Below, in pieces: positions 6,182-11,179 of a stretch of 64,000 bases of DNA. The notes under the pieces are model-generated. The model was not told the DNA's origin, ran no database searches, and saw only the letters and a list, made by a program, of their open reading frames with translations. Source of the stretch: Chlorokybus atmophyticus. Its lineage: Eukaryota > Plantae > Mesostigma and Chlorokybus algae. Position 1 is the stretch's first letter, and each line of letters starts with the position of its first letter. The translations under genes were made by a program, and so were the position numbers. The DNA lies in contig RHPI01002048.1 in the NCBI GenBank assembly GCA_009103225.1, positions 1,017,906 through 1,081,905 of the forward strand. The letters run 5' to 3'.

Positions 6182-9100
6182 ATGTCTACCATGGAGAGAT
6201 TTGAGAAAGTGAGCTTTGTGCTGTGTGATGTGCAATCGATGTTCCCCAATCAAAATGAGTTCATCTCAATGCCTCGTTGTCAATCAGTTTGAATTTTCAG
6301 TTCCACATGCGGTTATCACCATACCGACACCTTCTGCTGCTGCTTTGTGCTTTGTTAGTACATTGTGCCTATGTGATTGAATTCACATTAGACCCAAACT
6401 GTAAACCTGACAATTTGTGCTCGGGTAGCGTGCAAACGTACTGTCTTGTACTAAACCTTATTTCATCAATCGTTCGTGAGCGTTCATGTAGTGTACGCTC
6501 TACTTTGGTGTGCAATCGTGGTGATGTGCGCACTGCTGGTTGTTTTGTGCACGACTGCGTGCATGTCTTGACTGTGCGCACTTCATTTGGTAACTGCCGT
6601 TCTTTTACGATCTACACTCATATCTGTTCAACACAACATACTTGCAGCAAAGTCATACAAGAAGCTTGCAACTGCAGTATACATGACCACAGCACTAGCA
6701 GCAACGCACTTGTTACTACACAGATAAAAAGCCTTGGGCGGGGCGCTCAAGGCACAGTCATTCTGGTACGCCGTAAGGCGGACAGCAACAAGTTTGTCAT
6801 CAAGCGCATCTTCACCGATGCCGACGCTGGGGGTGAAGGGGAGAACAACAACAACAACAACAACAACAACAACAACAAATGCGATCAAGAGCACCAAGAC
6901 TTCATGTCGGAGGCATGCATGAATCGCATGTTTGCGCACCCACGCACGCATGCACCCACTCAAGCGTGCGCGCGTTGTCACCCCTGCACGTAGTACTGGA
7001 ACAGTGCATATACATTGGTCGTTGCATTCGCTGCTAGCAACGAGTAACACTTGCGGTTATGTTGGATAGGTGCGCGCACTGTCGGTGCTGAAGCACCCCA
7101 ACATTGTTGGGTACTATGGGTCGTTTGAAGAGGACGGTGTCCTCAACGTTGTTATGGAGTACGCTGATGGTGGTTCGCTCTTCCAGCACATACAGAAGGT
7201 AGGTTAGCTATGCATTCAGTTGACAAGCTCAACTCTGTGAGCACATAGCATGAGTTGACTCATTGAACCTCAATCGATCATATATTGAGAGTTGGTAACA
7301 CTGCATAGGCCAAAGCACCGTTTCCTGAGAGCGAGATCCTGGACTGGTTGGCCCAACTCCTGTTGGCTCTCAAGCACATGCACGAGAAGAAGATCCTGCA
7401 CCGCGATCTGAAAACAAAGAACGTCTTTCTCACCAAGAAGTTGCGCATCAAGGTGAGACAGCTTAGTTTAGGATTGGTGTGCCCCTGAAAGGCGCAATTA
7501 TCTAAGCCCAGTGTGCAGCGCGACGTCTTTGATAAGTAAATCTAACATTTGTTGCTCTGGTTTTTAGGCAATCCGCCTGTAAGCAAACGAGTTCTCAAGT
7601 TTCGTGCCGTGTGTACAATTGTCGCTCGTATGCCTTATTGTCTTGTTTAATGTTAACAGCTCAACATGCACATAATCAAGGTGTGACTTGCAGTTGGGTG
7701 ATTTTGGATTGTCGAAAGTGCTGGGCACGGCCTCCTCCTTTGCACAGAGTGCTGTGGGCACGCCGTACTACCTGTCGCCGGAGCTCTGTGAGGGTCGGCC
7801 GTACAACGGCAAGAGTGACGTCTGGGCACTGGTAAGAGCTGCTTTATATTGATTGTGCTTGCTGGTAACGTGCTGCGGGATTGCAATAAAAATCATGCTA
7901 ACATAACATGCTACATGCAGGGTTGCGTAACGTACGAGCTCACCACCTTTCGTCATGCCTTTGACGCAACCAACCTCCCCGCCCTGGTTCTCACCATCGT
8001 GCAGGTAGCCCCTCTCTCTCTCTCTCTCTCTCTCTCTCTCTCTCTCTCTCTCTCTCTCTCTCTCTCTCTCTCTCTCTCTCTCTCTCTCTCTCTCTCTCTC
8101 TCTCTCTCTCTCTCTCTCTCTCTCTCTCTCTCTCTCTCTCTCTCTCTCTCTCTCTCTCTCTCTCTCTCTCTCTCTCTCTCTCTCTCTCTCTCTCTCTCTC
8201 TCTCTCTCTCTCTCTCTCTCTCTCTCTCTCTCTCTCTCTCTCTCTCTCTCTCTCTCTCTCTCTCTCTCTCTCTCTCTCTCTCTCTCTCTCTCTCTCTCTC
8301 TCTCTCTCTCTCTCTCTCTCTCTCTCTCTCTCTCTCTCTCTCTCTCTCTCTCTCTCTCTCTCTCTCTCTCTCTCTCTCTCTCTCTCTCTCTCTCTCTCTC
8401 TCTCTCTCTCTCTCTCTCTCTCTCTCTCTCTCTCTCTCTCTCTCTCTCTCTCTCGCTCTNTCTCGCTCTCGCTCGCTCTCGCTCTCGCTCTCGCTCTCTC
8501 GCTCGCGCTCTCTCGCTCTCTCGCTCGCGCTCGCTCTCGCGCTCGCTCTCTCTCGCGCGCTCTCTCTCTCGCGCTCTCTCTCGCGCTCTCTCTGTCGCAC
8601 TCTCTCGCTCGCTCTCGGTCTCGCTCTCGCTCGCTCTCGCGCTCTCTCTCTCTCGCTCACTCTTTCTCGCTCGCTCTCGCTCCGTGTGTGCGTGTCACCT
8701 GCACACGGTCACACACACGCATAAGTACCACATCTCCTGAACCTATAAGTGCTCTGCAACGGGTCATGTACAGGCGCAGCCGGCCCCCGTGCCATCGACG
8801 TACTCTCCGGAGCTGCGCGATCTTGTGCGCCGAATGCTGTCCAAGGATCCGGACGCCAGGCCCGAAATTGACCGCATGCTCATGATGCCGCTATTGCAGC
8901 CGTATGTCCACCGCCACGCTGCAGAAGCACGGGTAAGCGAGTTTGAGCAAGATGTGACGCATGCAACAAAAGGTAGCTGTTGCAACCAGCTGACTTGATT
9001 GTGCGCCTTTGCTTGTATTTGAACAACCCAAGTAGGTAATTCAAGCAACAGAGTTATAACATACCTTTGCTTTGAAAAAACAGGAGGCCATTCGAGGCCC

Positions 9101-11179
9101 TTTGGCGGGGCCCAAGCCGTTCTTTGAGGCCGGGTCGGTAGAGACGCCCCTCAGCAAGGCCATGCAGCAGGACGCCGCCAAGCACAAGGAGGCACCCGCC
9201 GCTTCACATGTGTTGTCGGAGGTCAGTTCAGTGCCAGTATGGACCACCACTCTCATGATGGTCAAGAAGCACATAGTTCAGTTCAGGGTTCATAGCTGTT
9301 GTCGTTAATGTATACAAGACTGTGTTGTGGGTCAGTTGGAGGAGGAGCAGCAGTTTGAGAGGCTCATATACCGCATGCGGCACGCGTTGAAAGTCACTGA
9401 CCGCCGCGCTTCGGTAAGGACACCTCTTACACGTTTGTACTTCTTCGTAGCTGCCTTGTCAAGACATGTTGGTTCTCACATCAACTTGGCGGTGCCCTGC
9501 AGCAGGATCACGGGCGCGGCGTCCCCCATTTTGCCTGCTTCCCAGGGTCCCAGCTGGTCTCTTACCTGGCCACAACACTGCACTTGAACGACAGGTGGAT
9601 TGACTACAGCTGTACATGCATGAACAATGAGGAGAACAACAAACCGAAAGCAAATATCAATGTTGCCAACATGTCAGGGAGGATGCGGTGGCCGCGGCGC
9701 AGAGGTGGCTTGATGGGGGCGTGTTCTACCATGTTGTACGCAACGGAGAGCGGTTTATTGACTCACCTTCCGCGCTCTACCGCTTCAAGGAGGACGAGGT
9801 GGGCTCCATCCTCAACATGAAGGCAGTCTGGAATGGCCCCAACCGCTCCGCCGCACACATCGAGGCAGACTTCCGCAAGGTGAGTGCGCCCCCATTGAGA
9901 CATAGGTTGTCACTGTACTAGCCTAGCCAACACACGCGTGCACAGGCGTTGAGGGCCATATTCCCTGCATACACATTGGAAAGTGGGAGGTTAGTGGACT
10001 ATGAGGGACTGGCGCTCTCAGAGGCATTCCGCGATTATGCTGCTGCCGCCACTGAGCTTCAGGGCATGCGATTAGGAGAGCTTGCCTTTACGGAAAAGGT
10101 TGCAAATACTTGCCAAGCAGGACGTATAGCAAGTTTGCCAATCTAAATCTAACTCACTTTTTGTGGTGTACCTTTCGGTTGCAGATTACCCTATTCATCA
10201 ACATGTACAACGCGTTGGTTGTACACGGTTTTGTAGTTGTCGGACCCCCAACAGGCCTTTTCCAGGTAGGTGGTCAAATCAGCCACTCAACTTGTTTCCT
10301 CACTCCTGCTGTGATTGTTGCGCTGCTCCCCACTCAAAGTGGCACTCTGTCTTGAAACACAGAGGTTACATTTCTACAGCCACACGTGCTACAATGTGGG
10401 TGGGAGAACTTATGCATTGAACGAGGTGCAGCATGGCATACTGCGTGGCAACCAGAAGCCGCACGGAGCGTACCGGCGCGTCTTCCAGCCGCACGACTCT
10501 CGCCTTGCAGACGCAGGTGCAAGATGTGGCATAGTAGCGTACATTGCATTGCGGTCGCTCTCACAGCGTGTGACTGACACTCTCATGTGTGCAGTTGTGG
10601 TGTGGGACCCTCGGATCCACTTTGCATTGGTGAGCGGCACGCGCAGTTGCCCCGCGCTGCGAGTCTATGAACCTGATCACCTGGAAACCATGCTAGATGT
10701 CGCCACCAGCGAGTACTGCACACGCCATGTGCAGGTTTGACACTACTTCCAACAGGATGGACAGTTGAGATGAGCACCAACTCATTGCATGACGTACCAT
10801 GTGTATGTTTTGTCAGGTGTCTGCAGTTCCAGACCAGAGTGGGAAGCATGTTGTGCAGCTGCCTGCAATTTTTGAGTGGTAAGCATATGGGAGAGCTCAC
10901 GCAGTGCGTACAATCGCAGTCAAACACAAGGCCGCACATGTAGTCCCTAATTTTGTATAGTATTGTGGCATCACATTCTGTTCTACTCACAGGTACCATG
11001 AAGACTTTGCAACTACGGATGCACTGCTGCTTATCTGGATTGCAGAAAGGTTGCCGAGCGAAAGGAAAAGCGAACTCCGCTCTCTGGTAGAGCGGGACAA
11101 GGTTACTATCAACTATATCCCACATGATTGGAGCCTGAATAAGGTACGCAGCAACATTGAGATCGCACAATTGTCTTAG
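6182..11179 (+). CDS. NIMA-related (NEK) Ser/Thr kinase fused to a DEP domain and a DUF547 domain, multi-exon
   Basis: Kinase exons: MERFEK|[63 protein letters not shown]|GCVTYELTT. Phase-compatible exons then give DEP motifs ([35 protein letters not shown]) and DUF547 motifs ([59 protein letters not shown]). The 3' end may splice at 11143 instead of reading to TAG 11179. Confidence 0.85.
8012..8682 (+). repeat. Very long (CT)n microsatellite (~440 bp pure) followed by a degenerate (CTCG/CT) tract, inside a NEK intron
   Basis: Read directly from the sequence; an 'n' at 8460 sits at the pure/degenerate junction. Confidence 0.95.

Follow-up and report, generated by a model that had tools for sequence, protein, structure and literature searches.

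A single transcript of Chlorokybus atmophyticus encodes a NEK-type kinase with a DEP-DUF547 tail: gene structure, green-algal relatives and a possible role of the tail

NEK kinases act in cilia, and the tails known from them consist of coiled coils, RCC1 repeats, armadillo repeats and similar elements. A tandem of a DEP domain and DUF547 is found in a quite different setting, the class IV glutaredoxin-like proteins. Class IV glutaredoxins are still uncharacterised, and the full-length recombinant protein could not be purified (2026 review, PMC13621322). The DEP domain of P-Rex1/DEPTOR-type proteins mediates membrane or receptor association (PMC13621322). Here we describe a gene of the alga Chlorokybus atmophyticus that joins a NEK kinase to such a tandem. 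It lies in a stretch of 64,000 nucleotides of contig RHPI01002048.1 (the window, from whose first letter all positions are counted), and it is one expressed gene encoding NEK kinase, DEP and DUF547 on a single transcript.

Sequence reading and exon assembly gave an 18-exon gene on the forward strand at 6182-11310, with a single open frame of 733 codons and a product of 733 amino acids. Exons 1-7 encode a NEK1-like kinase; after a short linker come the DEP domain, in exons 9-11, and the DUF547 unit, in exons 11-17. All acceptors of the model are AG and all donors GT, save one GC donor at 6913, after exon 2. Contigs from three public runs of one study (X1, X2 and X3) were aligned to 8730-11900, with the repeat in intron 6 excluded. 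The parts of the locus are the following.

6182-6208, 6724-6912, 7070-7198, 7309-7452, 7694-7831, 7921-8004, forward strand: exons 1-6 (exon assembly)
8774-8932, 9084-9221, 9336-9413, 9503-9594, 9678-9879, 9946-10098, forward strand: exons 7-12 (exon assembly)
10185-10265, 10363-10516, 10595-10734, 10817-10878, 10993-11143, 11230-11310, forward strand: exons 13-18 (exon assembly)
6182-11408, forward strand: transcription unit from start codon to poly(A) site (exon model; X1 contig with poly(A); the public model Chlat1/8513 maps here)
6182-8932, forward strand: NEK-type Ser/Thr kinase domain, exons 1-7 (collinear Pkinase matches exon by exon; NEK1 the best match)
6766-6912, forward strand: 3' part of exon 2, with the β3 Lys, a poly-Asn insert, the αC Glu and the GC donor at 6913 (comparison with the public model; orthologs)
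6844-6878, forward strand: (AAC)n run, translated as 11 Asn within the β3-αC loop (sequence, translation, N-termini of orthologs)
8013-8680, no strand: (CT)n microsatellite in intron 6 (sequence)
9084-9413, forward strand: linker between kinase and DEP, exons 8 and 9, the DEP fold starting at the end of exon 9 (joints of the RNA contigs)
9360-9805, forward strand: DEP domain, from the end of exon 9 through exon 10 and the first two thirds of exon 11 (Pfam, profile, AlphaFold2 model)
9835-11143, forward strand: DUF547 unit, the end of exon 11 and exons 12-17, with the Pfam core in exons 13-15 (Pfam, RNA joints, AlphaFold2 models)
10517-10594, forward strand: intron 14, 78 nucleotides, in frame and stop-free (spliced out in the RNA contigs)
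11230-11408, forward strand: exon 18, with the last 26 codons, the stop TAG at 11308-11310 and a 3' untranslated region of ~98 nucleotides to the poly(A) site (joint 11143>11230 in X1, X2 and X3)

The X1 contig, 2171 nucleotides long, is 100% identical to the window and spliced, and its piece at 11228-11408 continues directly into a run of A. Its GT..AG joints (8932>9084, 9221>9336, 9413>9503, 9594>9678, 9879>9946, 10098>10185, 10265>10363, 10516>10595, 10734>10817, 10878>10993 and 11143>11230) coincide exactly with all 11 of the 11 introns predicted from exon 7 to exon 18. Upstream of exon 7 the contig holds a further 554 letters, the last 30 of which match the end of exon 6; this joint to exon 7 appears as a loose end at 8771. 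We infer from this length that it starts at ~6851, inside the (AAC)n run, where it seems to break. The X2 and X3 contigs show the same joints; at 90-95% identity they derive from relatives. Ahead of exon 7 they extend by 999 and 1152 letters, which leaves room for the entire kinase and a 5' untranslated region. We take all three runs to be RNA, because the contigs are spliced and polyadenylated, which hardly anything else would explain. Thus the kinase exons 6 and 7 are spliced into exon 8 in X1, X2 and X3, and X1 reaches the poly(A) site: the kinase, DEP and DUF547 parts share one transcript. The joint between kinase and linker, 8932>9084, is present in three runs with 137 nucleotides on its shorter side, and there is no contig depth over 8942-9047 in intron 7.

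The initial annotation, made from the letters and their open reading frames, had read the locus as one NEK kinase-DEP-DUF547 gene, and transcript contigs across the kinase-DEP region now bear this out. The exon junctions that it quoted (AAEAR/EAIRG, VLSE/LEEEQ, RRAS/QDHG, LNDR/EDAV and FRK/ALRA) are all right, while the end that it gave to the gene, 11179, has to be moved: the RNA contigs show intron 17 (11144-11229) removed, and exon 18 adds 26 amino acids before the TAG stop.

Comparison of the window with X2 and X3 also shows that the frame is maintained. Of 40 listed substitutions, 37 are at third codon positions (binomial p ~7e-15), and for the linker exons 8 and 9 this is true of six out of six listed differences. 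Since the differences concentrate at third codon positions, the whole frame, linker included, is under purifying selection.

We then examined the kinase head. Pfam scans were run exon by exon, and whole-protein comparisons used orthologs or the public model of the same gene as query; the latter, jgi/Chlat1/8513/Chrsp80S07898 (705 amino acids; below, P0164), was found by a word search seeded with an ortholog and maps to the gene at 6182-11408. Pkinase matches are collinear along the exons, with profile positions 5-41, 51-90, 93-138, 140-183 and 226-262 in exons 2, 3, 4, 5 and 7, respectively. Exons 4 and 5 alone have human NEK1 as best match (E 1.9e-13 and 2.6e-16), P0164 scores 219 bits against NEK1, 161 against NEK7 and 148 against NEK2 (the top non-NEK kinase, PLK2, scores 125), and the nearest solved structure is human NEK1 (E 1.3e-63). 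The domain covers approximately amino acids 4-290 of 733, N-terminal to a non-catalytic tail of linker, DEP and DUF547; the linker between kinase and DEP shows no obvious long coiled coil. The scores with NEK1 first, together with the GTPYYLSPE motif and the N-terminal position of the domain, assign the kinase, at the level of sequence, to NEK1-like NEKs.

The exon model contains the motifs GRGAQG (Gly loop), FVIKRI (with the VIK Lys), the αC Glu in MSE, HRDLKxxN, DFG and GTPYYLSPE, all conserved in orthologs. The kinase is thus predicted to be catalytically complete, in keeping with the intact motifs noticed in the initial annotation, with the β3 Lys and αC Glu depending on the predicted GC donor of exon 2. 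This exon matches Pkinase positions 5-41 and ends with the αC Glu at that donor (6913). Since orthologs conserve the codons ahead of the donor, intron 2 (6913-7069) appears to be a GC-AG intron. The 11 consecutive Asn encoded by the (AAC)n run in the N-lobe loop are found in none of the orthologs. The (CT)n microsatellite of intron 6 is ~430 bp long and passes into CTCG/CGCT-type repeats; because the repeat contains one N, the assembly within it is uncertain.

P0164 departs from the 733-amino-acid model at five places, 6766-6912, 7987-8004, 9503-9505, 10517-10594 and 11299-11310. At the first, the use of a canonical GT donor at 6766 skips residues 24-72, and with them the β3 Lys and αC Glu. 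At the next two, six amino acids are missing at the end of exon 6 and one residue at the NAGNAG acceptor at 9503. At the last two, the 78-nucleotide intron 14 is kept as 26 amino acids inside DUF547, and the C-terminus is different. The RNA contigs contradict P0164 at four of the five places (exon 6 end, 9503 acceptor, intron 14 and C-terminus). The GT donor at 6766 was rejected on the conservation, in orthologs, of the motifs it would skip. We conclude from these comparisons that P0164 is mis-spliced and probably makes an intact kinase resemble a pseudokinase.

To see how widespread the architecture is, we ran an exhaustive HMMER search with window positions 10363-10734 as query (exons 14 and 15 with the stop-free intron 14 between them), which returned 1333 DUF547 proteins. 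Pfam scans of long matches, a word search with the tail of protein P0002 and domain labelling identified at least 21 protein clusters with Pkinase, DEP and DUF547 in that order. The named holders are Cymbomonas tetramitiformis (CYMTET_24218), Pterosperma sp. CCMP1384, Pyramimonas sp. (two paralogs), Pycnococcus provasolii (XRA96564.1), Pseudoscourfieldia marina (XRB10331.1) and Chlorokybus itself (Chlat1/8513); the remaining clusters come from Tara Oceans contigs and other metagenomes. XRA96564.1 and XRB10331.1 are annotated 'serine/threonine-protein kinase'. The MMETSP transcripts of Pterosperma and Pyramimonas carry complete open reading frames (ORFs), and one relative, P0169, is a single uninterrupted ORF of 804 amino acids on gene-dense Tara contigs, so that the fusion there is independent of any splicing inference. 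The nearest relative of the window's protein, P0158, is also from Tara Oceans. The Tara contigs with orthologs belong to compact, almost intron-free genomes (L001-L003, 2236-4854; L004-L006). At the P0158 locus the kinase is split into two neighbouring ORFs 30 nucleotides apart, probably by one tiny intron.

In an unrooted maximum-likelihood tree of DUF547 (83 rows, quick search), the 21 kinase fusions fall, without exception, into one clade with SH-aLRT support of 100; the clade also contains five rows with short N-termini, which we read as fragments. The kinase-fusion relatives are 43-58% identical over the DUF547 unit. Glutaredoxin fusions lie outside the kinase clade, in several weakly resolved groups. 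The single clade argues that the NEK-DEP-DUF547 fusion arose once. The Chlorokybus protein, a single polypeptide with the order Pkinase, DEP, DUF547, stands within the kinase-fusion clade, which identifies it, on sequence grounds, as a member of a conserved green-algal NEK subfamily rather than a one-off. The subfamily seems to be limited to flagellate green algae of early divergence, with members on either side of the chlorophyte-streptophyte split, a distribution that would imply an old origin with later losses. The tree also bears on the suggestion in the initial annotation that a kinase has taken the place of the glutaredoxin: this is fair as a description of the layout, but a direct swap finds no support, as the kinase fusions form their own clade, nested in no glutaredoxin group.

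Searches of the literature on DUF547, on DEP with kinase, on NIMA-related kinases and on NEK architectures found no description of NEK-DEP-DUF547. A Phytophthora kinome paper describes a transmembrane kinase with a DEP domain, in its section on the TKL family and not as a NEK. The architecture, proposed at first to be undescribed, is so in the sense that no paper on the fusion was found; predicted proteins that have it, including a model of the same gene, are already public. Its parts are known, and the combination is in databases but unnamed.

Three readings would remove the fusion, its age or its activity. One is that two adjacent genes are present: a kinase whose stop would be the in-frame codon at 8996-8998, within intron 7, and a second gene, for DEP-DUF547, beginning with the ATG at 9162. 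The fusion would then stem from read-through or from a chimeric assembly. In its favour, translation past the exon 7 donor ends at a stop 21 codons on, and an in-frame ATG is present in exon 8. This model is, however, rejected because of the spliced joints, above all the GT..AG joint 8932>9084 with its empty intron; the same fusion is also seen in transcriptome orthologs and in an intron-free ORF, and the linker substitutions fall at third positions only. We give it next to no credence. The same low standing falls to a recent, Chlorokybus-specific domain shuffle, an idea already raised in the initial annotation. It would fit two species-specific traits, the poly-Asn insert and the long intron with its repeat. 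Against it, no fewer than five further named genera of green algae, and Tara contigs, have this architecture, in one clade and at 43-58% identity, and the at least 21 protein clusters span prasinophyte chlorophytes, Chlorokybus and marine metagenomes. Finally, the protein could be a pseudokinase without β3 Lys and αC Glu, as P0164 implies. P0164 uses a canonical GT donor where the alternative requires the rarer GC donor, and its Pkinase match begins only at profile position 51. Against this, full-length orthologs all retain the β3 Lys and αC Glu motifs (MNEIxVL region), and the skipped segment 6766-6912 encodes exactly those motifs in frame, up to the αC Glu at the GC donor. P0164 is contradicted by RNA at the four other places, and the length of the X1 contig agrees with a start in the disputed segment, at its (AAC)n run. 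A pseudokinase thus seems very improbable.

The fold of the tail was addressed by profiles and structure prediction. In the tail exons, Pfam matched DEP 37-72 in exon 11 and DUF547 11-30 in exon 13, 37-73 in exon 14 and 88-124 in exon 15; for P0164 as a whole the scores were 44.9 bits for DEP (cut-off 32.7) and 104 bits for DUF547. A sequence profile run against the PDB matched the DEP domains of DEPTOR and P-Rex1 (E ~1e-25). The AlphaFold2 model of P0164 residues 290-705 had a pLDDT of 87.8 and a pTM of 0.78, with one long weak loop only, residues 246-269, which is the retained intron 14. Residues 1-90 of the model have the DEP fold, with pleckstrin DEP at Z 11.3 (root-mean-square deviation 2.5 Å over 86 residues) and P-Rex1 at Z 11.2. 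DUF547 appears, in the model, to pack against DEP as a single module. The DUF547 unit was also modelled alone from the Pterosperma ortholog (P0152, residues 411-722), which is free of the insert artefact, and reached a pLDDT of 92.9. It is an alpha/beta unit of ~270 residues, as against the 125-residue Pfam core.

No solved structure was matched by this confident model. The sequence profile against the PDB matched DEP domains only; Foldseek matched only DEP with the two-domain model and had a best E of 0.34 with the DUF547-only model; and a search of the ESM Atlas with the DUF547 model returned only other DUF547 proteins. The best rows of VIA-align wide, the C-terminal domain of a GST at Z 5.0 and E. 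coli Grx2 at Z 4.1, are noise by the tool's own yardstick and a weak lead only. Alignments of DUF547 show 8 invariant and ~20 near-invariant positions, largely Asn, Arg, Asp, His and Cys; the invariant polar set comprises two Asn, Arg-x-Asn, Asp-Pro-Arg-x-His and Cys-Pro.

DUF547 is found with a range of partners. They include glutaredoxin-DEP (plants, Balamuthia), DEP alone, a TKL kinase, a K+ channel (SK/Ion_trans_2) and glycoside hydrolases, namely glucoamylase (GH15) and trehalase; rows of the ESM Atlas add an RGS domain and a bacterial VTT/DedA-type membrane domain. P0089 and P0172-P0175 are among these fusions. Published fusions include DUF547-PTEN in Entamoeba (PMC9122207) and DUF547-DENN in Oxytricha (PMC5940158), and a plant DUF547 protein with a MIP1 zipper sits in a polar plasma-membrane domain (bioRxiv 10.64898/2026.08.17.745151). 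Most of these partners are membrane-proximal signalling modules. The glutaredoxin-DEP-DUF547 order, usually described from plants and algae, is also present in the amoebozoan Balamuthia mandrillaris (P0071, KAL6069142.1).

We favour, at a probability of roughly 0.7, the explanation that this is an expressed NEK-DEP-DUF547 gene of a conserved subfamily, in which the DEP-DUF547 tail places or gates the kinase near a membrane. As in other NEKs, the C-terminal tail would set the site and timing of kinase action. The DEP domain would recruit the protein to a membrane, through its surface or through a receptor there, and DUF547 would bind a ligand or partner, thereby positioning or gating the kinase. 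DEP-DUF547 occurs elsewhere on a glutaredoxin or a TKL kinase, and DUF547 alone on RGS; the tandem may therefore be a portable membrane-proximal targeting or sensor module, to which interchangeable catalytic heads are attached. Taken by itself, the proposal of a portable tail cassette by which the kinase is placed at a membrane or receptor, or gated there, is drawn by analogy and is tentative, somewhat short of an even chance. A flagellar or cell-cycle role for the kinase is plausible, by analogy with NEK biology and given the flagellate lifestyle of the named holders. All of these presumably have flagellate, scale-bearing stages, a correlation over a handful of taxa.

Several points weigh against the favoured explanation. 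Read mapping covers exon 7 onward, and introns 1-6 rest on homology, the public model and the loose end of X1 between exons 6 and 7. The relative orientation of DEP and DUF547 is given by pTM alone. Ligand or partner binding by DUF547 is a guess, as the unit has no structural match or known function, and an enzymatic role is possible instead. The soluble glucoamylase and trehalase fusions misfit a purely membrane view of DUF547. Among the matches listed, the NEK architecture was not met in land-plant or Chlamydomonas proteins; an absence from land plants and core chlorophytes is suggested by the sequences compared.

A different division of labour is conceivable, in which DUF547 is the effector (an enzyme, redox or ligand-converting) regulated in cis by the head, or in which the tail autoinhibits the kinase until a signal arrives. 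The mostly polar or catalytic-type residues at the invariant and near-invariant positions would suit an effector, as would the fusions of DUF547 to hydrolases and glutaredoxin and the GST and glutaredoxin 2 rows at the top of the structural search. Those rows, however, lie at the noise level stated by the tool (Z 4-5), no known catalytic motif was recognised in DUF547, and there is no Pfam, PDB or fold match beyond DUF547 itself. We therefore consider this arrangement unlikely. Equally doubtful is a broader version of the targeting idea, that the tail is an ancient portable sensor or targeting cassette whose DUF547 is a new fold binding a small molecule or lipid, with the NEK form linked to flagellar or cell-cycle control. 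So is the matching scheme, in which different eukaryotes would couple exchangeable heads to a single membrane-proximal signal: glutaredoxin, NEK kinase and TKL kinase by way of the tandem, RGS or PTEN by way of DUF547 without DEP, with the NEK form kept only in flagellate (scale-bearing) green algae.

Returning to a tail that places or gates the kinase, the link of DEP-DUF547 to a predicted active NEK kinase favours a regulatory or targeting reading of the cassette and gives it an assayable output. Should the ancient-cassette idea be true, phosphorylation would be the first tractable read-out for DUF547 and for plant class IV glutaredoxins. NEK biology gains a tail type for which no prior report was found. 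In practical terms, the public Chlorokybus model is wrong in five places, and its pseudokinase-like appearance is corrected here. The finding is a combination of known domains, already in databases without a name; it is less surprising than first thought, and it offers a handle on DUF547.

Downstream, a convergent gene for a cyclophilin-type peptidyl-prolyl isomerase lies on the minus strand at 11536-12700 (Pfam Pro_isomerase in two exon ORFs). Its contig is far deeper (word depth 338 vs 65) and begins just ~130 nucleotides away from where the NEK gene is polyadenylated. Upstream is a WD40-repeat gene (771-1474, forward strand), and an assembly gap (a run of N at 5050-5220) separates it from the NEK gene.

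Among known systems, P-Rex1, DEPTOR, RGS7/9, Dishevelled and Epac share the DEP fold with the Chlorokybus tail (Z 10-11, root-mean-square deviation ~2 Å), but none of these signalling proteins has DUF547 or a NEK kinase. With NEK kinases the protein has in common the N-terminal kinase, with HRDLKxxN, DFG and GTPYYLSPE, and a non-catalytic tail; the literature on NEK architectures yielded no report of a DEP or DUF547 tail on a NEK. The tail itself is, as the initial annotation held, the tandem of class IV glutaredoxin-like proteins (Pfam scans; PMC13621322). Like Arabidopsis GRXlike1 and GRXlike2, the Chlorokybus protein has DEP-DUF547 at the C-terminus, behind one catalytic-type domain, and is of similar length. 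The N-terminal domain is a glutaredoxin in the former and a NEK kinase in the latter; no glutaredoxin was matched by Pfam in any exon or in P0164, where Pkinase was found instead. Kinase fusions and class IV glutaredoxin-like proteins are ~31-37% identical in DUF547, with the latter outside the kinase clade.

Closer in kind are P0040 (871 amino acids, MMETSP), P0023 and P0035, in which DUF547 (and DEP in P0040) is also joined to a protein kinase. In contrast to the Chlorokybus protein, they retain the glutaredoxin and carry a TKL/Tyr-like kinase at the C-terminus, the order in P0040 being glutaredoxin-DEP-DUF547-kinase. They form a separate clade (SH-aLRT 98), which indicates that the TKL-type kinase fusion is a second, independent one. 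The closest counterparts are the unnamed green-algal orthologs, which fall in the same clade as the Chlorokybus protein and share with it the order and spacing of Pkinase, DEP and DUF547; the poly-Asn insert in the N-lobe is what sets Chlorokybus apart from them.

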